Below are positions 3,001 to 50,586 of a stretch of DNA of 64,000 nt, in pieces (the stretch's first letter is position 1; each line of letters begins with the position of its first letter). The DNA is from Podarcis cretensis (taxonomy: Eukaryota). Under the pieces are notes generated by a model. That model saw only the letters and a program-made list of their open reading frames with translations. It was not told where the DNA came from and searched no databases. The stretch covers positions 105,338,001 to 105,402,000 of the forward strand of contig OX638152.1 of the NCBI GenBank assembly GCA_951804945.1. Direction: 5' to 3'. The position numbers and the translations under genes were made by a program.

Positions 3001-4812
3001 TACCATGCAGAGACCTTGCATAAAACAGTGTTTGAAAAAAATATGACACCCCCCCACACCTGCAAACTGAAGTGGAACAATCTAGAATGCAACAACTTCA
3101 TTCTGAATTAGGTGTAGATTGAGACACACCCCAGTGAAGTCCTCAGGTTTCAGCAAAACTGAGCTTAAACGTAAGCCTCCTGGTCCAGGCTATTGAGATG
3201 CCATCTATAGCCCACTGGCTCGACAACAGCCCTCTCAAATAAGAAGGGCATGATTTGGAAATACTGAGACCCTGGGAGATGACTTCCATAGAATCATTAT
3301 TCCAAACCAATTAGAATCATTATTCCAAATCTTCCTCCTTGAAGAAACTAATTTCCTTCTCTGAATTAAAACCAATAACCAATGCACAACATTCCACACT
3401 CGTTTGAGTGGCATGCAACCCACCCCAAGATGAGCATGTTTAAATTAGTCATTACAGGTAGACAGTTGTGCATGTGCTTCAGTCTCTACTAGACTTTAAA
3501 AGTAATTAATTTTGGCTGGATCATTGCCATTCCACAAACATCTGCCATCAGTTTCAGGTAAAAGCATAATGTAGCCCCACATGTACTTGCACCATAAAAA
3601 TTAAACCATTTCAGAGCAGATTTACACATACATGTACGCTACTAGACAGTTCAGCGGTGCAACCCTTGATAAATGCTGGCTGAATGGATGAACTGACTCC
3701 ACTGAAAAGCACTATAGTCAAGAGAATGTACAATATTAAAATGTTATCCATTGTATTCAAACTCTGATGGTCCATTCATACATGCAAGTCACCATTTGAT
3801 TTGCTGCCATCAAATGAGGAGCACGCATGCCTGCAGGGTCAGCCTGAAGTCCTTGGCTACAAGGCAAAAATCAAAATGTTGATTCATGCCAAGAATAAAT
3901 ATTGTGCTTTCACTTCCTTTTTATTTATTTGTTTGTATATTTGAATCCCATGAAGTGGAGCTAAACATATAAATTAAACATACACGCAGCTAAACATATA
4001 TTCTCAATCCAGTTGAAGTTAAGCACAATCTGAGCCAACAGGGGGTGGGGGGCGGGTAACGGCACGTGGCTAAAACCTTTTCTGTGGAATTTCAAAGTGT
4101 TTAACTTTCATCAGATAGTAGCAATCTAGCAAATCTCACTGCAGAATTTATGTCTCTTTTAACTGCTTAGTTCTTTTGGTCATGAAGAAAAAGTGGCAAG
4201 GGCACACAGTACTCTTATGTCAAAAATAAATATTATGTGTACAGTATATCTCTGTGTACAGATATATTTAATAGGACATTCTAAACATGAAAACATACAT
4301 TTGCAAACAGAATTCACCTTGACATACACAAATGGAGAGCTACATTCACTGCATCTGCAAATTTCCTCGAATCAAACCCCATATGTGTAGATATATTTTT
4401 TATTAAACTGAACAATATCTACCATCTCCACTTAGCAGTGAGGGATGGGCCTTCCCATTTTCCCTGGGAATATTACAGTGAAACCTCAGACAAAGCCCCT
4501 CTGCTGGCCAATTTCCAGTTCTGAGAAACCTGATCAAACATAGTGGTTCTTAGGTGTAAATGTGCACCAGTTTCACAGTACCGTAATGCTTCATGGGTGT
4601 GCCATTTTTTTTTTTTTATTTTGCTGACCTAACTTCCAATCAACCTGCTACCGATGAACTGAAACAAGAATCAGGCCCAAATGCAGTCAGGTTTTTGAAC
4701 CCTGGGCCAACCCATCTTGGGGGATGCCTGGAGAGAGGCCTCTCAGCAGGTTTCACTGCAGACCTAAAATGCAACTGGGCAGTGAGGGAGTTTCGGGTGA
4801 TTTCTAAAAGTC

Positions 4813-4821
4813 TCCTACCTG
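4813..4821 (-). other. PCDH17: Splice donor of PCDH17 exon 1; intron 1 runs off the left edge of the window
   Basis: Minus strand reads CAG|GTAGGA directly after MSIIQ. I found no match to the expected next exon (TDNFPAEPNY...) in 1-4800. Confidence 0.85.
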
Positions 4822-7419
4822 AATTATGGACATCCGGCTCGGGGGAGCCTCACTGACGTTAGTCCCTTGCCCTGTGAAGCTGGTGTGGCACCCCACATGC
4901 CCCTGCGGCACAGTCAGGTTGTTGGAGGCAGGTTTCAGGTACATCACCTCCGACCTGGGCGAGCTCAGGGGCAGCCGGGTCTGGTAGTCAAAGTACATGG
5001 GGGACGTGGCCAAGGAGGGGCTGCTGACCACGTTCATGACATTGAGGGGCCCCCGGCTGTCCTCCCCTTCACTGGGCACGAGCATAATGTCGTTCTTGCT
5101 AATCTTCTTCTTCTTGCCCTTGCTCCCGCCGCTGCCTCCGCCCCCACCTCCGCCACCACCCCCTCCACCCAGCTGGGGGTGGCTGTACTCAGCAATGCGG
5201 CAGTTGTAGGTGCGGATCTCCTTGTTCTCCCGCTTGCACTTCACGGCAATGGTGATCATAGCAGCCAGGAGGATGATGGAAACGGTGCTCAGGGTGACGA
5301 TCAGAGGCAGGGACAGGTCCCAGTGGGGTCGCCTGTGCTGCTCGCCATTCACCTGGGGCTCACCTGCTTCAGGCAGAGGTCCAGCCAAGGCCCGCACAAT
5401 CAGCTTGGCCACTGCGGAAAGGCTGGGCTTTCCGTGGTCACTGACCTTGACCACCAGCTCAGCCACAGGGCTCAGCTCTTCCCAGTAAGGGTGCAGTGTG
5501 CGGATCTCCCCACTGGTTGGGTCCATCTCAAAGAGGTGCTCCTCATTGCCTTCCACAATCTCGTAGGTGAGGCGCCCACTTTCCCCAAAATCGCTGTCCA
5601 TGGCACGGACAGTGCCCACAGGATACCCAACGCCAGCGTTCCGCGGGACCTGGAGCTCGGCGGTGTCATTGATGAGGGCTGGCAAGACAATGAGAGGAGC
5701 GTTGTCGTTGACATCGAGGACAGTGACGCGGACGGTGGCGTTGCTCTCTCGGTGGGGGGAGCCAGAGTCTTTGGCCAACACATGGAACTCAAAGTGCTTG
5801 GTCTGCTCGTAGTTGAAGCTACGCAAGGCATAGATGGCGCCATTGGTGGGGTTGACGGAGACATAGGTGTAGATGGAGACGTCACCCACGTGCCCTGGCA
5901 GGATGGAGTAGGACACTGTGCCGTTCTGCCCCAGGTCTGGGTCCTTGGCCAGCACAGAGCCCAGGTACTCCCCGGGGATGTTGTTCTCAGGGACCTGCAG
6001 CACGTAGAGGCTCTTACTGAAGCGGGGAGGGTTGTCGTTCTCGTCCAGGATCCTGACAGAGAAGGATTTGGTGGAGTTGAGTGGAGGGCTGCCCCCGTCT
6101 CTCGCCAGGATGGTGACATTGTACTCGTCCTGCACCTCTCTGTCCAAAGGCCGGTCTGTCACCACGGTGTACAAGTTGTCATAGTTCTCCTCCAGGGTGA
6201 AGGGCACGGCCCCGTCCCCGCCGCTGCCATCCCCTTGCACCCGGCACTGCAGCTGCCCGTTTTTGCCCGAGTCACGATCCGTCACTCTCACCAGGGCGAT
6301 AACGGTGCCCGGAGGAGCCGCCTCGCTCAGCGCCCCTTGGCGCACCGAGACGAAGCCGATGGTGGGCGCGTTGTCGTTGCGGTCGACGAGGCGCACGGTG
6401 ACTTTGCAGTGGGCCGGGATGGGGTTGGGCCCCAGGTCGCGCGCCTGCACGTCGATCTCAACGAGGCCGCCCTCCTCGTAGTCCAGGTTGCCCTTGACGC
6501 GGATCAGGCCCGTCTGCGGGTCGATGCTGAAGAGCTCGCGGACCCGCTCGGGCGCGTAGCCGCTGAACGAGTAGAGCACCTCGCCGTTGGTGCCCTCGTC
6601 GGCGTCGGTGGCGTTGAGGTCGATGACGGCCGTGCCCAGCGGCGCGTTTTCGGGCAGCTCCACCACGTAGGAGGCGGCCTCGAAGACGGGGCTGTTGTCG
6701 TTGGAGTCGATGAGGCGCACGTTGAGCTGCACGGTGCCCGAGCGCGGAGGGTCGCCGCCGTCGAGCGCCGTCAGCACGAGCGTGTGGTGGCTCTGCTCCT
6801 CGCGGTCGAGCGGCTTCTGCACCACCAGCTCGGGGAACTTGGTGCCGTCGCCGCGGGCCTTGACGTCGAGCGAGAAGAGGCTGTAGTCGTCGCGGGTGAG
6901 CACGTAGGTGCGCAGCCCGTTCTCGCCGGCGTCCGGGTCGTGGGCGCTGGCCAGCGGGAAGCGGGTGCCCGGCGCCGCGTTCTCGGAGATGTCCAGGTCC
7001 ACCTGGTCCGACGGGAAGGCGGGCGCGTTGTCGTTCAGGTCCTGGATCTCCACCTTGATCATGCAGATCTCCTGGTCGTTGGCGAACACCTCGAGCGACA
7101 GCTGACACTTGGCGCTCCGCCGGCACAGCGCCTCGCGGTCCAGGCGCTGCTTGGTGTACAGCAAGCCGCTCTCGCCGTCCACGTCCAGCAGGTGCGGCGC
7201 CGAGTTCTCCAGCACGCGGAAGGTGGACTTGGCGCCGCGGGCGCGCTCCAGGGACGGCAACCCGCCGCCCGCGCCGGGCTGCAGCCGGGCATCGCGGCCG
7301 ATGTTGCCGATCACCGTGCCGGCGCCCTGCTCCTCGGGCACCGAGTAGTTCAGGTTCTTGAGCGTCAGGGCAGGCAGAGCCCAGCACAGCAGCAGGCAGC
7401 AGGCCGAAAGGGGCCACAT
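4819..7419 (-). CDS. PCDH17: Protocadherin-17, first coding exon: signal peptide, six cadherin repeats, transmembrane helix and start of the cytoplasmic tail; downstream exons are outside the window
   Basis: The 867-codon frame starts MWPLSACCLLLCWALPALTLKNLNYSVPEEQGAGTVIGNIG. It has repeated DxNDN/LDRE/AxD cadherin motifs, a TM segment LPLIVTLSTVSIILLAAMITIAV and a tail KCKRENKEIRTYNCRIAEYSHPQ...RMSIIQ that matches PCDH17 as I recall it. The exon ends at ATT CAG|GTAGGA (GT at 4818-4817), a phase-0 donor. Confidence 0.96.
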
Positions 7420-23591: not shown

Positions 23592-24674
23592 GAGAATTCT
23601 GTTAGACGCTTCTAGCCTCTTGCGTAGAACTTCACAAAGGAATTACTATTAAATCAGTTTAATTCTGTGGTGCAGATTAATTTGCATGGATGAGGATGCT
23701 GGTGGGAAATTAAACATGCATTCACAATGGAGAGAGTCATCCAATCATATCAAATTTACTGCATGTAATGCTTTAAAAGAAAATATTATGAAAATGATCT
23801 ACCGGTGGTACATGACCCCAGTCAAGCTTGCAAAAATTTACCACTTGCCTAACAATAAGTGTTGGAAATGTAATGAGACTGAAGGCACCTTCTACCACCT
23901 TTGGTGGACCTGCCCAAAGGTTAAAGCTTTCTGGGAAATGATCTATAATGAAATTAAGAAGGTCCTTAAGTGGACTTTTCCTAAGAAACCAGAGGCTTTT
24001 CTCTTGGGCATGGTTGGCCAAGTGGTGTTAAGGAAGGATAGGACTTTCTTTATGTATGCCACTACAGCAGCAAGAATTCTACTGGCAAAGTATTGGAAGA
24101 TGCAAGAACTACCTACTCTGGAAGAATGGCAAACAAAGGTGATCGACTTTATGGGACTAGCCGAGATGACGGGCAGAATCCATGACCAGGGGAAAGAGAC
24201 AGTGGAAGAGGACTGGAAGAAATTTAAAATATATCTTAAAAACAATTGTAAAATTGAGGAATGTTAAGATGTCAGGGGTAAGAGGTAAAGAATTGCAGCA
24301 GTAATTAAAAAAAAATTAAAGGAAACTTTATGAAAGGGAATTAAGACAATGGACCTAAGGGTTGCTAAAGAACCATTAAACAAGGATGCAGGGATGGGGA
24401 GGTATGGGGAAGTCAAAAGAAAGAAGGGTATGAAATGATGATTTTGAAGCTATATTGATCTATATTGTTTTTGTTATCTGTCTGAAAAACGAATAAAAAT
24501 TATTAAAAAAAAAAGAGAGAATTCTGTTAGACGCTTCTAGCCTCTTGCGTAGAACTTCACAAAGGAATTACTATTAAATCAGTTTAATTCTGTGGTGCAG
24601 ATTAATTTGCATGGATGAGGATGCTGGTGGGAAATTAAACATGCTTTCACAATGGAGAGAGTCATCCAATCATA
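23592..24674 (+). repeat. 158-bp direct repeat pair (23592-23749 and 24517-24674) flanking the L1 fragment
   Basis: Both copies run gagaattctgttagacgc...gtcatccaatcata with one mismatch (catgcAttcac vs catgcTttcac). Confidence 0.95.
23750..24514 (+). mobile_element. L1-clade LINE, 5'-truncated: ORF2 C-terminal Cys-rich domain, 3'UTR and poly(A)
   Basis: Open frame IKFTACNALKENIMKMIYRWYMTP...CWKCNETEGTFYHLWWTCPKV (CX2C-X8H-X4C) ends at 24267. It is followed by a G-rich 3'UTR, AATAAA at 24492 and an A-tail at 24505-24514. Confidence 0.92.
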
Positions 24675-35940: not shown

Positions 35941-36927
35941 ACCCAAGGACCAAATCTGTGGAATAGTAGCTTGACATCCTTTTTAGACCATTTAGGGAAA
36001 GAAAAGCTGACTTTGGGAGAGTGACCTGGAACAGAGAAACGGCATGGGAGGGAAAATTCAGCCTATTTTCCTCCTGTGAAGTTTCAAAAGAAAGTTGTTT
36101 TTTATTTTATGTATTTGAAGAATTTACACCGCACCTTTACATCATTCAGTGGCCAAAATGACTTAAACAAAATAATGAAAACATCAGTTAATACAAGCCA
36201 AAAATACAGTATGACCAAACACATCCAAAACTAGGTTAGAAAAGCAGATCAGCTAACAAGCAGTGACAATTAGGAAAACACCAAAAGACAAAATAAAAGT
36301 TTTACTTGCCATCTAAATGGGCGCAGAGACAGTAAACTGCTTTGCTTGTTAACACCACCAATAAGCCAAATTGTGTTTTTTTATTTATTTTAAAAATAGT
36401 CATATTTTGGTTTCTGTTAAAAATCTTCCTTATTATCCTTCTCAACATACTTCATGCACCTTTTCACTACAGCCTGAATGGTGCTGAAGTCACACAAATT
36501 TACTTATTTATTGGGGGCAGTGAGTGGTGGAGGAGCTTAAATATATCAAATGTTCTGAGCTTAAAGGACAGAAAAGATTTGCTTTGAATGAAGCCAAAGT
36601 TACTTTTAATGAAGTTTAATGAAGTTCAAAGGCAGATCCTGGAACAGTCTTTGAAACTCAAGTTTCAGTCCTTGAATAAAACCAATCTCACATTTTAGAA
36701 CATGCGCAGATAGTTTCCCAAAGCTGAAGTGTTGGTCCAAATACAGAGCAGTGATGAGAGAATAAGGGAGAGAATGTCTGTCCAGGGGATGGAGGGACAA
36801 AGACAAAGAGAAATGGCTGTTGCTGCCAGAGGTCCTTTAACCAGGAACTTCACCATCTGAGGCTGGGGAAAAGAACAGGGTCTTTTGACTTTCCAATTGA
36901 ACTCAACATGAACCTCACGGTTTCTTT

Positions 36928-38527
36928 TCTTTTCATTCCCTCGTTTCATCAACCTCCTCTCACCTCCCTTTTTGTATTCCACTTCTATTAATTATTTCAG
37001 CAATTCCTTTCCATCTTTCTCTATTTTCTGTCATATAATTATCTTAATTTATTTTAACCTTATCTTCCATTAATGCCATAATACTTATTTATACTTAACT
37101 CCTTATAACATTTCTACTAAAGCCATATAATTTCATTCCAACATTTTTCTAACACTCATTAATTTTACAATATTTCTATAAATAAACTTTAAACATTTTC
37201 CAATCTTCTTCCACCGTCTCTTCTACCTGGTCTCGGATACTGCCAGTCATTTCCGTCAATTCCATATAGTCCATCAACCTGGTGATCTTCTGTCCGAGGC
37301 TCTTAACTCTTTTCCAAGTCCCTTCTGCATGTCTTCTTCATATTTATACATGCACTTTACTTTGTCTTCTGTTGATCTTGTTCTTAATTTCCTTCCTTTG
37401 ATGCCGAGGAGTAGATCTCGGGGAGGCTCCAACCTAGCAATGTTTTTATTCCTTCTCGACAGGTCAGCCAAATCTCCGTAGTTAGCACTATAGTCCAAAA
37501 GATGTTTCAGGACGTGTTTCAAAATCCCTCCAAAACTGAAAGTCCCCACAACTCCAATCTCCTCCTGGCCCAAGTCCAAATCCCAAAGATCAGTACATCC
37601 CTGCATGAGGGAATCTATCCAACTTTCCTTCTCAAATCCAAGCAGGGTTCCAATCCTCAAAATCTGACTTTCTCTAAATTCAGTCATAGAAGGCAACAAC
37701 TTATATTCATCAAATTGCCTCTGTAAGACTGGAACTCTCTCCACTTGTATTACTTTAGGTTCAACAACAACTTTCCCCCTTGCCTTCTCAACAATTTGCC
37801 ATGTCAAAGTAGATTCCTGAAACAATTCCTGAATAGTTTCTGTATAGATGTTCACTTTTTGTCCCAAATCAGTCACTTTTTGTTCCAAATTGTCAGTTTT
37901 GATAGTCAACACATCCGTCTTCTTCTGAAGCTGTTCCAATGAAGCACTTATCTTGCATAATGCTTCTTCTGTCGACATTCTTACCAATCCAAGGCTTCTT
38001 CTGTCGACATTCTTACCAATCTAAGGTCAATCCCTGGTTCTCACAGTTTTTTATCTCTGCAGCTGGTAATCCCCCCAGCTCCACTCCTGTAACAGTTTCA
38101 AAGGCTCCCTCTAGAGGGAAACAATTTCTATTTGTATCAATCCTTTTAAACACAGTTCAAGCAACAAAATTAGTTTCAATTTTCGGTTACTTTTACTCCT
38201 TTTTAAACGCAGAAGGAAACAATGCAAACAATATATTTCTCTTATTTGCTATCTGTCCACATACGTTTTATTCACAGTCAATGAACTTTCCCAAAACGTC
38301 AGTCTTACTAGCAGCCCGTTTCTGGTGGTAATTTATCTTTCTTCACTCTCTCTCCTGCAGGCTTACACAATCCAAAATTTCCCCCCTCTTCTCCTGCTTC
38401 CAAGAGGGGGTTTAATGATTTTAACCGATGGAGGTTTAATCCTTTACAGAAGACTTTCCGAGACTTTAGCTTGCAGCCTCTTTGCTTCAGCCTATTTACA
38501 AAAGGGGAAGGCGGACTTCTTGTTTTA
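36928..38527 (-). mobile_element. Non-autonomous L1-derived retroelement A (HAL1-like): partial 5'UTR, ORF1-like frame, last ~40 codons of ORF2, 3'UTR
   Basis: 17-bp TSD aacctcacggtttcttt at 36911-36927 and 38528-38544. Region 37276-37149 translates LMDYMELTEMTGSIRDQVEETVEEDWKMFKVYL*KYCKINEC*, homologous to the L1 ORF2 end at 24140-24267. No endonuclease or RT is present. Confidence 0.85.
37274..37978 (-). CDS. L1 ORF1-like coiled-coil protein (234 aa from ATG) of element A
   Basis: Uninterrupted frame with a heptad-like N-terminus LEQLQKKTDVLTIKTDNLEQKVTDLGQKVNIYTETIQEL, located between an L1-type 5'UTR and the ORF2 tail. C-terminal motifs are shared with the ORF at 47938-48504. Confidence 0.6.
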   Translation of the reverse strand: MSTEEALCKISASLEQLQKKTDVLTIKTDNLEQKVTDLGQKVNIYTETIQELFQESTLTWQIVEKARGKVVVEPKVIQVERVPVLQRQFDEYKLLPSMTEFRESQILRIGTLLGFEKESWIDSLMQGCTDLWDLDLGQEEIGVVGTFSFGGILKHVLKHLLDYSANYGDLADLSRRNKNIARLEPPRDLLLGIKGRKLRTRSTEDKVKCMYKYEEDMQKGLGKELRASDRRSPG

Positions 38528-38925
38528 AACCTCACGGTTTCTTTGTTGCTACTTAGCAGGATGGTTCAGCAGCCTTGGAAGCAAGTCGATTTTTCTTTTT
38601 CTTTTTGATTTCTTTAAGCTTTATGAAGATACTCAAGACAGGGGGGTTTATTACAGCGGAAAACCAGACAAAAACAATCACTTCAGTAGATCGCAAGCAC
38701 CCAAACATTAAAGGTTTCTTTCAGGGTCTTTTCACATGTTATGCTGTTGAAACAGCAGAGTTGCCATTAAATGTAAACACAAAAGGGAACCACAGCTGAT
38801 CCTGGATGCTTGATCACTAGGGTTGCTAGGCAACCAGACCAAAATTGCCCGGCTTGACTTTTCACCTGGGAAAATTGCCAGATGTTCTTCGGTAAAGACC
38901 AGGATGTTGGCTGGTTGCTTTTTAA

Positions 38926-43971: not shown

Positions 43972-46151
43972 GTTAACATTTTCATCTTTTGTTATTTTAT
44001 AGTATTCTAGAAAAAACATAAGTTCTATAAGAATTACTGTGCTGTTGGGAGTATTTGTTAATTTTTTTGTCCTCTGCTGCTGGATTTATGCTGTTTTGGG
44101 TTTTATGGTTATTGGTTTTATTTTTATGTAATTTTTTTGTAAAGCTGCAAGCTACCTGTAACACATTTTGTTATAGGGGGACACAAATAAAAAAACAGGC
44201 ATATATGAAGAAATAGCCATTACAAAAAAAATGCCAGGTTAGAGACTTCTGTCCTTGTCCCCTTTTCTCCACCTTTCATTTCCCCTCCCACCACTTGGAT
44301 AACTTATGTCAAGGCAGGTGGGTCAGAATTTGTGTGTGAGAGAGAAGGAGATGGGGCCAGCAGTATCGGTGGTGTCTTTATCAATGACAGGTAATGAGAG
44401 GGGAGTTCATGTATATGGGAGGAAGGGATGGAAACCGTCACAACAGGTAGCATTTCCAAACACAATGCCAAATTTATACTTTCTTTTTTTTTGGTAGATT
44501 TCACATTCCACATTTAGTTAGCTGTTCATTTTGATGGAGTTTAACAGAAAAAATCCCTCAAAATACATTACGGATAAGAACTGAGAAAATCAATGTGGGG
44601 GTAATTTTTGCACACATTCAGAAATATTACGTTGTAGCTGTTAGATACTCACAAGTGCCATTCAGGTCTTCAGATGAGGGGAATAAGTGAGGGGCAGAGT
44701 GAGGGTGGCCGCATGCACCAACCCAGCCCCCAGTCTCCCTGTGCCCACTGATTCCACCATGACTATCCTGAAAAAGCTAAGGAAAGTCTGGCCAAAGGTG
44801 CTTAGACTCCTCCCTGCAACTGAGAACCCTGATTCTGCAAAGTTCTCAACTGTGGGAAAGATTTGAAGGACATTCAGAATGCAGGAAGAACCCCATGAAA
44901 GTGGTTGGCCTCAGTGCAAGAAGCCATGGTCCACCTGCTACTCCCGAGAAATAACACTGAGCTAATTGGAGGAATGTCCAGAGCACAAAGAGTGAAGTGG
45001 CAGAGAGGAAACAGTGGAGGAGGAGGATCATTCATTTTGACAGGCAGATCTGGCTTTTAATCACAGTGAATTATTTCCCCAAGGCACTCCAATCACAGTG
45101 ACTTGGGGAGGAATTAAAAATTGTTTGATTTCCACTTGGATCCTTTCCCCATTGCAAGTCAAGGGAAAGATTGCCATTGTATCCCTCAAAATCCATGGGA
45201 GAGAAAGAAGCTACTCTCCACCAATGGCACTTGGGGTTACAAGGTCCCTGTTCTAGGGTGACATTTTCCCCACAACAGTCTGTCCTGGGGATTTAGGCTG
45301 TTTTTTTCCTCCAGCATGCATTTACCTATGCAAGATTTATTTCTATCCCAAGGAGAAGAGGCTGAGGGAATTCCATAGGAGTGAGCAGAAGCCCATTAAC
45401 AATCTTTGTGTAACAGGATTTTTGCTGGGTGGTGAGATTTTCCTCACTGCAGTCTGTCCTGAGAATCCATGCTCTTCATCTTCCACCCCAGCCCACTTCC
45501 TGAAAGTGGGAACACCTGCTCTTTTGGGAGAACTTCTGCAGCAATCATATGACAGGCTTTGGAAGGTGTGGCCATGCCTACAAATGGCATTCGATTCTGG
45601 CAAAAAATGAGAACGTTATGGACTTTTCCTTTTTATACAAAAAAGCAAAATGTAAAGGTAAATAAACAAACAAAACAAAACAAAGCTAGCTGGATGGATG
45701 GATGGATCTGCCTTCAATCTGGCAGGATTAGTCTAACCTTGAGGGACTCCTATGCCTGTAAATTTCATCCACTTTGGTCCACAGGAGAATGTTATGAGCA
45801 GAAAAGGACTGTAGGGCTCTGACTTTAGGACCCCCTTCTCCCAAAAAACCACCAGGTGCTCATGATCTTCCAAGGTTCTCCACTTTTCTCCACAAGGAGA
45901 AAAGACTCCCCACAGTGGAAGATATGCTGTATATTCCAATATAGGGAAGGGGAAGGAATGGTGCATTTTTAGCTGCATTTCCTGAAGAGGGCTATTGTCT
46001 GTGGCTATTCATTGTAAGGTAAGGTGAGTGGTGGGTGAGAGAGCAGTTTTCAGGGAAGGTTATCTGGTGTCTGCTCTTTTAACTGTGGAAGCCCTGTTGC
46101 ACTTCCTCACTGATACTCCACTGGTCTAAAGTGCTATGTAAGGCAATGGTA

Positions 46152-46366
46152 AAGGTAAAGGGACCGCTGACCATTAGGTCCAGTCGTGGCCGACTCTGGG
46201 GTTGTGGCACTCATCTCACTCTATAGGTCGAGGGAGCCAGCATTTGTCCGCAGACAGCTTCCGGTCATGAACAACGGGGGGAAGGTCGCGGGGATTCGAA
46301 CCGCTGACCTTCCGATCGGCAAGCCCTAGGCTCTGTGGTTTAACCCACAGTGCCACTCTCATCCCT
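46152..46366 (-). mobile_element. Sauria SINE with internal deletion
   Basis: Same head, B box and ACCTTT tail as the copy at 20623 but about 140 bp shorter. 13-bp TSD taaggcaatggta at 46139-46151 and 46367-46379. Confidence 0.9.
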
Positions 46367-46407
46367 TAAGGCAATGGTAGCATGCTGGGAAAACTACAAT
46401 TATAGAA

Positions 46408-46526
46408 TAAGGTTACCAGACATCCCTGTTTCCCAGGGACAGTCCCTGGATTTACACATCAGTCCCCACAATCCATTGAAGTTGAAAAGTGTCCCCAGAT
46501 TCATTGAAAAAAATCTGGTAACCTTA
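46408..46526. mobile_element. 119-bp hAT-type MITE
   Basis: Perfect 13-bp TIR TAAGGTTACCAGA/TCTGGTAACCTTA; flanks ttatagaa / ctgtagaa match at 6/8. Confidence 0.75.
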
Positions 46527-47124
46527 CTGTAGAAGCCAATTTTATGCCAAATAAATTCTGAATTTCATACCAACCTGCCCTTCCCTCATTTTTTTTTTTT
46601 TTTTTTTTTTTTTTGCCAAGGCTCAGTGAGGACCTTTGCTGTGGCTGTATGCGGATTGTGAATTAATAACCTGTGCCCTCCCCCTTTATTGCTGGCCCCC
46701 TGGCCTGCGGTCAGCAATGATGGAAGTTGTAGACCAATAATATCTAGGGGCCCACATTTTGCCACCCCTGGTTCCATCCTCAGGAGTTTTATTTGTACCT
46801 GTCTCTTCTTGCTTCCTACTGGTACAACTAAGTTCTTTTTATTCCAGCTGGACTGAGATGTTCCTCTCAGGACTGGTCCTATTATGAGGCAGAGTGAGGT
46901 GGCTGCCTTAGGCAGAAGATGCTGAGGGGGTGTGTGTAGACATTGCTGGTTGGGCCAGGCAGCTGCCCCTGCATCTCCTATGCCAGCCTGCTGCACTCAG
47001 GCGCAGTGCCCTCAGAGCTGAAGAGCGCTTCAAAGGCTAGTTTGGTCAGCTCCTGCATCTGAAATGGGGGAGACGCCATCCTGTCAATTGGCTTGGCCTT
47101 AGGCAGTCAAATATCTTGGGCCAG

Positions 47125-48961
47125 GACTTCCGGGTTAGCGCGATCTGGTTAATGGCGGATTCCCTCCGAGCTCCGGAGGGAATTGGCTCCGCTGGAGAAG
47201 GGTTCTACCGCGACGGCGACGTGGGGACCCTCAGAAACCGCAGGCGCTGAAGCCTGCGGACTTGGTGACTCGGCGGGCACCTAAAGCGCCCCCCGACCCA
47301 CGAAGAGCCTTTTTAAAGGCTGCGGAGAGGGTACGGGGAGTGGCGTGGTGCTGTGAGTGGACCGCTACTGCAGTGGAGCGAAGCCGCGAGCCATGGCCGG
47401 AGACCGCTGACTTTCTTCCCTGAAATTCGGACTTTAATTAATCCGTGAGTAAAATGGAATTTGGACTTTAAAATTTCTACCTTTGAATTCGGTACGATCG
47501 GGGGATGTGCTAAAGGGAAGTCCGCACCCCCCTGCTTACAGAAGATTTAAAGCAAGGATCGGAGAACTAAGGTGGAGAGTTTTTTCTTTTTGGTGTTTTT
47601 TAAAAGATAATATTTTCATGAATTTGACAGAAGAAGATTTGTGCTGGAGAGTAAGACTGGAATTTTAGAAGCTTTTGTTTAAACCCCCCCCAGACCCGGG
47701 AGTGTCCTGTATGTGAGCTGGAGAAAAAGGAACAAGGAGTTTGACAGCTGTCAAAGGAGTTGTCAAACGGGCAGTGAAAGTTAAAAATCTTATTATTTAA
47801 CACCTTTCTGGACTAAATTTGCTACATTTAAATTAAAGTGGTTGGGAACAAAGTAGTGAAATAATAAAGTAACGGACTGTTGGGAAAAGACTATTAAGTA
47901 ACCAGAATCCCCCTAGGGGAAACATTGAAACACTACAATGACTGCAGATGGAAAATTACAGGCAGAGATAGAAAGAATGTTTTTTCTCGTGGGAAAGTTG
48001 CAGGAGCAGACTACGGCTATGAGTAAACAACTTATAACCTTGAACTCTAAAATAAGTGACTCTGCTGAATGCACAATGGACTTGACCGGGAAAAAATCTG
48101 CAGCTGAATTAGAAGAGACAACTTCGGAGCAGGAGGAGAGGGAACAAGGGCCAGTACAGATGGAGAGTACCAACCAGAAGCCTACATTGTCAGAACACAA
48201 AGAAAAAGACCTTTGGATTACAAATCTGCGAAAGATGCGAAAGAGGAGGGAGGAAGCCCCCGGAACACTTGGAATATTTGAATTTAAAAGAAACAAGAAA
48301 TATGATTGGGGCTTCCTCTTTGAGTATGGATTGGCTGACCTTTCGCAGCAGCTGGTACTAAGTACTTTGGATGGAAGAAAATCTGATGAGACTGAGCTAG
48401 AACTCCTTCGAGACCCGAGGACCAACAAAGAGGGCTACCAACAAAATCGCCAGAGAGAGACTGACAGAGATTTAAAGGCCTCAGATGTGAGGAATCCAGG
48501 CTAAAAACAGTTTTTGTGGACATGGGGACATTGGGAAGGGACAGAAACCAGGGTGGGGGGGGGAAGAATTTTTTTTAAAAAATGTTTATGACCTTTGTGT
48601 TTGATTATTATGACCTATTTTTAAGATAAAAGGGAAATTCGTGGAAGGAATTCGAGTCGACCTTAGAAAAGGATTTAATATTTATAAGAAAACTGGATAA
48701 GTAAAATTTGGCCAAGTAATAAGAATTAAGTATTTCTTTAAATATATATATATATAATAATAATATGTAAAGGATGAGAGATATGAACTTGCTGAGCTAA
48801 TTTAATTGAATTAGGATGTATGAAGGGGGGGTGGGGGAAGGTCAAGAACTGGGGTTAGGAAAGTAAGGATATGAAACTTTATATGTGTGGTCTTGGTCTG
48901 TGTGTGTGTGTCTGTGTCTATAAAATGTGAAAACTCAATAAAAATTTTATTTAAAAAAAAA
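47125..48961 (+). mobile_element. Apparently full-length non-autonomous L1-derived retroelement B (HAL1-like), 1.84 kb
   Basis: Starts GACTTCCGGG...AATGGCGG with a ~300-bp CpG-rich 5' end. It has a single 188-aa ORF, a G-rich 3' tract, AATAAA and poly(A). 17-bp TSD caaatatcttgggccag at 47108-47124 and 48962-48978. Confidence 0.88.
47938..48504 (+). CDS. ORF1-derived protein (188 aa) of element B
   Basis: ATG-initiated open frame with an N-terminal heptad pattern LQAEIERMFFLVGKLQEQTTAMSKQLITLNSKI. Motifs YGLADLS and DLKASDVRNPG* parallel those of the element A ORF. Confidence 0.55.
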   Translation: MTADGKLQAEIERMFFLVGKLQEQTTAMSKQLITLNSKISDSAECTMDLTGKKSAAELEETTSEQEEREQGPVQMESTNQKPTLSEHKEKDLWITNLRKMRKRREEAPGTLGIFEFKRNKKYDWGFLFEYGLADLSQQLVLSTLDGRKSDETELELLRDPRTNKEGYQQNRQRETDRDLKASDVRNPG

Positions 48962-49147
48962 CAAATATCTTGGGCCAGTCCTGTTTCTTCTAAGTTGATT
49001 TTATGTGCTATACATTTTTCTGTTTTGATATCTTTATTGTCTTTCATTGTTGGCTGATGTAGTTTATTGTGTTTTTTCAAATGGTAATCAATCTCCTTGA
49101 GCACCATGTCTGCAGGATATAAATTCTACTTAAATGGTACCTGATAA

Positions 49148-49395
49148 TTTAGTGTGGCAGCCCCTGCACTTTGGAACTCCCTGCCTGTGGATATCAAGAA
49201 GGCACCTTCACTGTGCTAAATGCTAAATGCCCAAAACATTATTGTTTAGACACTTCTACCCAGATGCTTACTATATAACTTTTTGTAAATACTAGAGTTG
49301 TAAATTTTTCCTGATTTTGTTTTAGCTTTTTGTAAACCTCTTTGAGGATTCTTTTACAACCAAATGGTGTATACATTTTGTGAAATAAATACAAG
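49148..49395 (+). mobile_element. Old L2 3' remnant
   Basis: tttagtgtggcagcccctgcactttggaactccctgcct encodes FSVAAPALWNSLP, followed by an AT-rich tail. Confidence 0.65.
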
Positions 49396-50586
49396 AAAAT
49401 AAAATAAACAAACAAGCAAAACAAGCAAAAATGCAAACAAGCAAAAATGCAAAGGTGGTGGAGCTTCCACTGCATCCGGAGCCTCTACAATTTGGCAGAA
49501 AAAATGTAAAGGTAAGGATATCTGTATGTAGACACTGCTGCTGCTGCCTGGGGGAAGGCTGAGGGGAGTATGCAGAGAGAAGGAACTAATTAGGCATTTA
49601 TATTCGCCCCCCCCCCCCCCCGAAAGTCACACAAGTGACTTTATGTGATTCCAGCAGGGGAAGAGGATTAGGGATGCAAAAAGGCATTTGTTTCCATTTT
49701 GCCCTATATGAGTCACATGCAGCACTGTATCCCTTCTACCACAGTTTGGATTCTGCAAAAAACAAAACCCAACTTTATTTGACGTGCTGTTTGCTGTGGC
49801 CAGATTTAATAAAGTAAATAAGTATGCTATGGTTACATGATTCTGCACCATTTCAGGGCTGGTGGTGGTTGGGAAATGATATCAATAATACACTGAACAA
49901 AATAACAACAGTGAATTGCAGACTGGGGGAAAAATGGCAACAGCAAAAACTGTATTGTGTTTGCCTCTTTGGTTTTCATTCCTGTTTGGTGATGGACACG
50001 CAATGACACAATCTCTGGTACCATTTCCCATTTCAATAGAATTCTCCAACATCCCTAAAGAGAATCCTCAATATATTGAGCTGTATTCAATTAAATTGCT
50101 GTGCTATAGGAATCCATCACAACAACCCCCCCCCCGCCCAACGCAATGGGACTTCCCATCTTCTCCCCCAATGCCCCTCCACAGATCTGTTCAGGGGGGT
50201 TGGGAGAAGCCACAGAGCAGCACACAGAGGGTGGAGAGGGACAACGGCTTCATCCAGCAAGCACAAATGCTTGCTGAAGGAATTATCTCCTTAGCGCTAT
50301 GTTGAATGAAGCCCATTACTTTTATTCCAAAAGTTTAGTTGGCAATCAGCTCTTTTTATTTGTAGTATCTTGCCCTTGCTTATTCCTTAAAAAGCAGTGG
50401 GAAATGGGTCTTGTCTTGGTGTGGCTTTTACTTCCTTCAAGACACACCTCTGATGCAAAGCAAGAATAGGTCAAGGATAAAACATTGTCTTAAAGACAGG
50501 TGAAAAAAATACAAATGACTTCTCCTGTAATCACATGAATTTACATCTACACAAAACATGAAGTCTTGGGACATATTTGCAGGATA

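Follow-up and report, generated by a model that had tools for sequence, protein, structure and literature searches.

A high-copy, L1-headed retroposon family lacking ORF2 and encoding a short coiled-coil protein in Podarcis lizards

Introduction

Positions 47125-48961 of a 64,000-nucleotide stretch of the genome of the lizard Podarcis cretensis (the window; GenBank assembly GCA_951804945.1, contig OX638152.1, positions 105,338,001 to 105,402,000, forward strand) hold an insert, denoted here as element A, that looks like an L1 retrotransposon at its ends and has only one short open reading frame (ORF) between them. Two questions are raised by this locus, namely whether the short structure is a family in its own right or a single damaged L1, and whether its protein is the first-ORF protein of L1 (ORF1p). 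A first-pass annotation made from the sequence had proposed a half-L1 (HAL1)-like element, that is, a young non-autonomous family parasitising lizard L1. Here we conclude, with a probability of about 0.8, that element A is a young copy of an abundant non-autonomous Podarcis retroposon family that uses the L1 machinery and encodes a coiled-coil protein kept by selection. A second member of the family, denoted as element B, lies on the minus strand of the same window (36928-38527). 

Structure and insertion hallmarks of element A

Element A is bounded by a perfect 17-bp target site duplication (TSD; CAAATATCTTGGGCCAG, 17/17 identical), which sets its length at 1,837 bp (Table 1). The target sites are rich in A past the nick in both elements (GT/CAAATA for element A and AC/AAAGAA for element B), and both fit the preference of the L1 endonuclease, whose target consensus is TT/AAAA. 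L1-mediated retroposition leaves TSDs of about 7-20 bp that start A-rich at a T-rich nick site, together with a poly-A tail, and perfect 17-bp TSDs, A tails, and A-rich TSD starts were found in elements A and B. Element A is a structurally complete, recently inserted retroposed copy.

The element opens with GACTTCCGG, and ATGGCG follows 19 bases on, at element positions 28-33. In the whole window, GACTTCCGG occurs once, and this occurrence coincides with the first base of element A (47125). Since at least one match was also obtained in 16 of 100 shuffles, the count itself is weak evidence, and it is the position that carries the weight. The first 300 bp of element A have a GC content of 64% and contain 29 CpG dinucleotides, with an observed/expected ratio of 0.97 compared with 0.39-0.57 in the remainder of the element, and the 5' untranslated region (UTR) is presumed to be an internal promoter. 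At the other end, the last 34 nucleotides (nt), poly-A signal and tail included, resemble the end of an ordinary L1 3' piece in the window (z = 4.9, 0/300 shuffles), and the similarity of the G-rich 3' part to the same L1 is marginal (z = 2.5, 9/300 shuffles).

The longest plus-strand frame of element A is a 188-codon ORF (ORF A). There is no ORF2, since just 457 bp lie 3' of ORF A, and no endonuclease (EN) or reverse transcriptase (RT) domain was found in the four ORFs searched (ORF A, an antisense ORF, and two 5' UTR ORFs), none of which had a Pfam match at E ≤ 10. Element A therefore lacks the ORF2 with EN and RT domains by which an autonomous L1 is recognised. Twelve mechanical ORFs of at least 40 amino acids (aa) overlap the region; one of them, a 171-aa antisense frame with a TTG start (47913-48428, minus strand) that covers most of ORF A and has no Pfam match, was likewise taken as mechanical. 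No tRNA gene was found in 47100-49000 by ARAGORN, and no Rfam family matched 46100-49100 at the gathering score.

Most of the structural description in the first-pass annotation was confirmed, including the intact 1.84-kb element with a perfect 17-bp TSD, the L1-style 5' terminus with undecayed CpGs, the single open 188-codon frame starting with a coiled-coil pattern, and the lack of space for ORF2. The claimed resemblance of the 3' end to the L1 at 24380-24514 held for the last 34 nt and was marginal for the G-rich part, so that it is weak overall.

Copy number and family status

Four sequencing runs were aligned to 46300-49800 at 85% likeness, and the values reported here are summed contig k-mer depths. 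At least part of element A is contained in 18 of the 24 listed runs (8 organisms, 10 studies). In run X1, contigs with no difference to the window and depths of 42-54 span both flanks and both junctions of element A. Because these contigs join the flanks to both ends of the insert, this very insertion is present in the X1 sample. The flanking bins of X1 had depths of 47.1 (47002-47118) and 54.3 (48991-49107), whereas all 15 bins in 47119-48873 read 114,550-592,822, with the ORF bins at 114,550-302,503. The edges of this high-depth block coincide with the ends of element A. Read as an order of magnitude, these depths amount to thousands of single-copy equivalents along the full length of element A.

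Depth in X1 also bears on the continuity of the element. At 48509, which lies five bases 3' of the stop codon (48502-48504), T instead of the A of element A was counted in 67 contigs, and the depth of these contigs equals all the depth at this position, indicating that the stretch from the ORF into the 3' UTR is contiguous in the family. Element pieces were also found in runs X5 (organism B) and X7 (organism D), in which 302 and 23 contigs, respectively, matched at ≥99% over the whole stretch; the flanks had no depth in these two runs, which are thus uninformative about this locus. Among the 15 of 28 joints listed, none was an empty-site joint skipping 47125-48961.

These depths, together with the homologues in Podarcis lilfordi described below and element B, support the view that the short form is a high-copy family and not a one-off deletion. 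The single-copy structure that the first-pass annotation had named as the outcome contrary to its proposal is contradicted by the X1 depths of the element (114,550-592,822) and its flanks (47-54). Its proposal of a young non-autonomous family is upheld by the same depths, by homologues on six P. lilfordi contigs, and by the second member in the window.

A family of short proteins

The protein of ORF A belongs to a family of ~170-215 aa. A search with the single sequence returned seven proteins of 176-204 aa, with 45-62% identity and 100% coverage. When a profile was run against 1.84 billion representatives, 11 proteins were found at E ≤ 0.001, all of 129-215 aa, and no relative of the size of ORF1p was found among these representatives. 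With the ORF of element B (ORF B) as a single query, none of the 387 candidates received a score. Putting ORF B at the head of a profile lets in candidates of up to about 415 aa; of the 3,792 candidates of this search, 13 proteins reached E ≤ 0.01, and every one of them was 129-214 aa long. A metagenome scan matched 60 patterns, of which none was confirmed.

Two of the clusters found include seven proteins that NCBI lists as 'Hypothetical predicted protein [Podarcis lilfordi]' and that are located on six contigs differing in length (62.8-137 Mb). The P. lilfordi proteins P0018, P0024, and P0027-P0031 (NCBI) are family members annotated as genes, some of them truncated or reading through the stop. 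They are probably copies of a transposable element (TE) counted as genes, and family members inflate the P. lilfordi gene counts because they are listed as hypothetical predicted proteins. One of these proteins, P0018, runs past the usual stop; over residues 96-129 it aligns with the other frame of 48453-48566. Since P0018 reads through into it, the sequence following the ORF is common to both species.

The two elements of the window belong to the same family because one protein, P0017, matches both ORFs, with 36% identity to ORF B over 231 aa (E = 1e-30) and 29% identity to ORF A (E = 4e-17). Compared directly, ORF A and ORF B are 28% identical over 114 aa. At the DNA level, blastn found no similarity of element A to element B or to any other part of the window, so the kinship of the two elements rests on the protein. 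A maximum-likelihood tree of 37 rows, from which five rows shorter than 160 aa were omitted (P0018, P0021, P0028, P0029, and P0030), showed many deep and well-supported lineages, all with open frames. ORF A formed a branch of its own, and ORF B grouped with P0017 and P0019.

The protein has a coiled-coil-like N-terminus and is not a recognisable ORF1p

The N-terminus of the ORF A protein has a coiled-coil pattern. In residues 3-45, the amino acids L, I, V, M, or F occupy 75% of the a and d heptad positions, a value reached by 3 of 2000 shuffles. Two AlphaFold2 models, built from 9 and 16 sequences, had a mean predicted local distance difference test score (pLDDT) of 53 and 55, respectively. 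They contained one confident helix at about residues 2-45, other helices of low confidence, and no beta strands.

None of the 16 family members tested matched the Pfam L1 ORF1 family at E ≤ 10, and the Pfam matches over these members were scattered chance matches, each in one member only. The family profile found no ORF1p in the PDB, where the best match (E = 0.21) was to unrelated proteins, and a Foldseek search of the PDB with the low-confidence model gave no match. In the ESM Atlas, the best score was 0.81, with no informative named family; one cluster, of which 14% was Retrotrans_gag, scored 0.76. Homology confined to the coiled coil would fall under the thresholds of such large searches. 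By Pfam, the PDB profile, and the models, the ORF A protein is not a recognisable ORF1p, as it has no detectable RRM or C-terminal domain (CTD).

The first-pass annotation had suggested comparing the ORF with L1 ORF1p by HHpred or structure prediction; the profile search of solved structures and the models recovered no ORF1p and no RRM-like strands, and a coiled coil was all that emerged. Descent of this coiled coil from that of ORF1p is possible. In lizards, the ORF1 coiled coil is reported to show unusual conservation (PMC5381506), which parallels the conserved N-terminus found here, although this is a parallel only.

Conservation of the open reading frame

Conservation is concentrated at the two ends of the protein. 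The mean pairwise identity among eight A-type proteins was 0.66 in residues 1-45, 0.39-0.45 in residues 46-160, and 0.67 in residues 161-188, rising to 0.79 in the last 16 residues. The C-terminus (...RDL[KR]ASD.R.PG) is the sole motif common to A-type and B-type proteins. Lineages that are only 23-63% identical all retain the full-length frame, with its start and its C-terminal motif in common. When drift to the observed divergence was simulated with substitutions only, that is, without counting insertions and deletions (indels), 0.2-0.9% of the ORFs stayed open. The differences listed for codons 171-182, small in number, were all synonymous (4/4), which fits constraint on the protein rather than on the DNA.

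Relationship to L1 and to element B

Anolis clade-1 L1s share a conserved 5'-terminal consensus (GACTTCCGGTGN8ATGGCG) and have 5' UTRs with CpG islands, 792-1,465 bp in length (Boissinot & Sookdeo 2016, PMC5381506). The first nine bases of element A are those of this terminus, and the length of its 5' UTR (813 bp) falls within the published range.

Element B also links the family to L1. Its ORF is followed directly, in another frame, by an unmistakable remnant of the C-terminal tail of L1 ORF2, which is 75% identical over 127 nt to the ordinary L1 of the window at 24140-24266 (blastn, E = 1e-18), and the corresponding protein alignment reached a score of 160 (z = 27). Element B is almost without an A tail, and it contains a 32-nt tandem duplication (37959-38022, 94% identical) by which the region of the start codon is present twice and a short additional frame arises upstream.

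Two further candidates for ORF2 sequence, both noticed by eye, did not hold. A resemblance of the C-terminal third of ORF B to the in-frame C-terminal end of ORF2 in the L1 at 23686-24264 was considered, but BLASTP gave a best E of 1.2, and an hhalign comparison of the family with that L1 ORF gave an E of 0.22 and a probability of 0.3%, so the idea was dropped. A decayed ORF2 tail past the stop of ORF A scored z = 1.0 and -0.3 in DNA shuffles and z ≤ 0.6 at the protein level, and is counted here as a possible remnant. Evidence for the L1 ancestry of element A itself thus comes from its 5' motif, its last 34 nt, and its kinship with element B. Judged from these 5' and 3' sequences and from the ORF2 tail of element B, element A appears to have L1-derived ends.

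Table 1 Features of elements A and B and of the L1 comparator (window coordinates)
Feature	Position	Strand	Note
Left TSD copy of element A, CAAATATCTTGGGCCAG	47108..47124	.	pre-insertion site GGCAGT/CAAATA
5' UTR of element A, 813 bp	47125..47937	+	L1-type 5' terminus, CpG-island-like first 300 bp
L1-type 5' motif, GACTTCCGG and ATGGCG	47125..47133 and 47152..47157	+	
ORF A, 188 codons + stop	47938..48504	+	N-terminal coiled-coil-like helix, variable middle, conserved C-terminus ...RDLKASDVRNPG
3' UTR of element A	48505..48936	+	AT-rich with G-rich tracts
AATAAA (48937-48942) and 9-A tail (48953-48961)	48937..48961	+	last 34 nt like L1 end at 24481-24514
Right TSD copy of element A	48962..48978	.	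17-bp direct repeat
Ordinary L1 3' piece	23686..24514	+	ORF2 end, 3' UTR, AATAAA, poly-A; L1 comparator
Element B, 1,600 bp	36928..38527	-	diverged member of the same family; perfect 17-bp TSD 36911-36927 / 38528-38544
ORF B	37274..37987	-	237 aa as listed from TTG; 234 aa from first ATG
L1 ORF2 C-terminal tail remnant	37150..37276	-	directly 3' of ORF B stop, other frame

Proposed mechanism

The combination of an L1-type head, a poly-A end, and a conserved short frame suggests how the family might be mobilised. Transcription by RNA polymerase II would start in the L1-like CpG-island 5' UTR, the RNA would be polyadenylated at the AATAAA, and the coiled-coil protein would be translated from this RNA. 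L1 ORF2p, supplied in trans, would copy the element RNA at a nicked target by target-primed reverse transcription. The coiled-coil protein may have been kept by selection for helping its own RNA be chosen, either as a coat on that RNA in cis or as a partner in joint assemblies with L1 ORF1p or ORF2p.

A broader and more tentative idea, which we regard as rather doubtful, is that lacertids harbour an old and diversified lineage of L1 parasites, in which ORF1p has been replaced by an own coiled-coil protein of ~190 aa without RRM and CTD. Such parasites would greatly outnumber the autonomous L1s on which they depend, and their protein would serve as an adaptor or a decoy, for example by entering ORF1p oligomers via its coiled coil or by tethering element RNA to ORF2p. 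If this were true, the adaptor or decoy protein would represent a novel route by which a non-autonomous retroposon gets past the cis-preference of L1.

Evidence to the contrary and alternative explanations

Several observations weigh against an L1-mobilised family with a selected protein. None of the 18 runs that contain at least part of element A is on record as RNA, and in run X8, which is guessed to be RNA, coverage is partial over the 5' UTR and the ORF and absent from the first bin and the last 320 bp. The copy number was estimated from summed contig depth, which is not copy number, so that "thousands" gives the order of magnitude only. In the models, the middle and C-terminal parts of the protein had a pLDDT below 50. 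Among the 19 ORF differences listed, which are the best-supported subset (147 more were found over the whole aligned stretch), 10 were synonymous compared with an expectation of 33.5%, which is not significant (P = 0.067). Protein databases contain only called ORFs, and the open frames of the family are thus ascertained. As for the L1 connection, the spacer between GACTTCCGG and ATGGCG in element A exceeds that of the Anolis consensus, the post-stop stretch of element A shows no significant similarity to the ORF2 tail of element B or of L1 (z = 1.0 and -0.3, respectively), and the L1 comparators were the Anolis consensus and the 3' piece in the window, not a full-length Podarcis L1.

Some of these points would suit a family that is mobilised by L1 but whose ORF is a functionless relic, its RNA being a non-coding passenger like a long short interspersed element (SINE) and its open frames a product of ascertainment. 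The poorly conserved middle of the protein (identity 0.39-0.45), the low pLDDT of that part, the nonsignificant synonymous excess (10/19), and the lack of a match to any named family are all in line with a relic. However, a relic would hardly keep the full-length frame, the start, and the C-terminal motif in lineages that are 23-63% identical, when 0.2-0.9% of frames survive substitution-only drift even before indels are considered. Both termini are distinctly more conserved than the middle, and none of the four changes listed for conserved C-terminal codons alters the protein. We therefore consider a relic ORF unlikely, and prefer a family with a selected coiled-coil protein.

Explanations that dispense with such a family fit the data less readily. 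If internal deletion or template switching during reverse transcription repeatedly generated the short form from full-length L1s, no self-propagating short family would be needed. This is quite improbable given that high depth extends over every bin of the element, the ORF included, and varies by no more than about five-fold, that 67 contigs carry the same base at 48509 just 3' of the stop, and that P0018 extends into the same post-stop sequence. Moreover, a full-length parent with ORF A was not seen, as there was no ORF1p-sized relative among the 1.84 billion representatives. A processed pseudogene, or several retrocopies of a host mRNA or long non-coding RNA copied by L1 by chance, would account for the mRNA-like layout (a 5' end with a CpG island, a long 5' UTR, a single ORF, a 3' UTR, AATAAA, poly-A, and a TSD) and for an ORF without a TE domain. 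It would account neither for a depth thousands-fold over that of the flanks nor for the first nine bases, which equal the conserved lizard L1 terminus; the relative element B has an L1 ORF2 tail, and the family occurs on six P. lilfordi contigs. With its high copy depth and L1 terminus, element A differs from what defines a processed pseudogene, namely one or a few copies of a spliced host mRNA whose parent gene bears introns, and we give this origin very little credence. Finally, an ordinary full-length L1 that lost its ORF2 after inserting here is compatible with this one copy taken alone, but such a single-copy structure is already contradicted by the high repetition of the short form and its presence in another species, and ORF A is not a truncated version of a recognisable ORF1. 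This last possibility can practically be dismissed.

Surroundings of element A

Other repeats flank element A. A SINE fragment lies on the minus strand at 46150-46360, with an X1 depth of 7.6 million (bin 46300-46416) and a loose-end consensus that is like a tRNA T-arm. It had no ARAGORN or Rfam match, and we take it to resemble the squamate Squam1/Sauria SINE. It is followed at 46400-46623 by an abundant repeat (X1 depth 546,598, bin 46417-46533) and then a run of ~26 T at 46590-46615, a pattern suggestive of a poly-A retroposon on the minus strand immediately 5' of element A. Downstream, a short repeated block at 49108-49224 had an X1 depth of 103,629 and many loose ends at 49148 and 49186.

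Farther away in the window, an 871-aa open frame on the minus strand (4807-7419) contains five cadherin repeats (E = 7e-94) and a Cadherin_2 N-terminal domain. A weak match to a cadherin cytoplasmic C-terminal domain (E = 0.0022) was below the Pfam cut-off. The frame looks like a single-exon protocadherin-type gene, and the window is thus apparently located within or close to a protocadherin cluster. A 957-aa frame opposite to it had no Pfam match.

Comparison with known retroposons

The non-LTR retroposon HeT-A of Drosophila telomeres has a gag-like first ORF only and needs the reverse transcriptase of another element. It differs from element A in that it belongs to the Jockey clade, is targeted to telomeres, and has an ORF that is a recognisable Gag. 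SINEs and SVA-type passengers are mobilised in trans by L1 ORF2p via their poly-A end and can reach high copy numbers. Unlike SINEs, whose heads derive from tRNA, 7SL, or 5S RNA and contain an internal pol III promoter, element A has no small-RNA head (0 tRNA genes, 0 Rfam matches) and has an L1-type promoter end and a conserved frame.

The closest autonomous elements for comparison are the clade-1 L1s of Anolis. They share with element A the GACTTCCGG...ATGGCG terminus, a long 5' UTR with a CpG island at its start, an AATAAA and poly-A end, and an N-terminal coiled coil that is the best-conserved part of the protein. However, element A has neither ORF2 nor RRM/CTD and is 1.84 kb long compared with about 6.4 kb, and the ORF1 of clade 1, at about 1,066 bp (PMC5381506), is roughly twice as long as ORF A. 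Two Anolis L1 families are reported to have 75 and 144 copies (PMC3787681). The Podarcis element is apparently orders of magnitude commoner, although this comparison crosses genera and uses a rough depth measure, and is indicative only.

The HAL1 elements of mammals, which encode ORF1p (Smit 1999; Bao & Jurka 2010, as cited in PMC5753468), are the system that the first-pass annotation had in mind. No report of half-L1-like elements in lizards was found in the literature searched, a limited collection judged by titles and abstract openings. Half-L1s are described mainly in mammals and are defined by ORF1p, whereas the present family is a reptile family with an L1-type head and without ORF2, apparently far commoner than the reported lizard L1 families, and its conserved gene consists of a coiled coil and a short conserved tail only. 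If this protein is needed for mobility, the family would offer a simple natural system in which to study how an RNA gains access to L1 ORF2p in trans and what an ORF1-like coiled coil does alone.

Like HAL1, element A has L1-type ends, no ORF2, one ORF, an amplified family, and L1-type insertion hallmarks, and to this extent the HAL1-like label was apt. The part of the label that did not stand is the protein, since HAL1 encodes ORF1p whereas the ORF of element A has no detectable RRM/CTD and no ORF1p match (0/16 in Pfam, none in the PDB, no strands in the models); the hosts also differ, being mammals for HAL1 and a lizard for element A. We therefore do not file element A as a member of HAL1, whose defining feature, an encoded ORF1p, it lacks; functionally, it resembles the mammalian HAL1.

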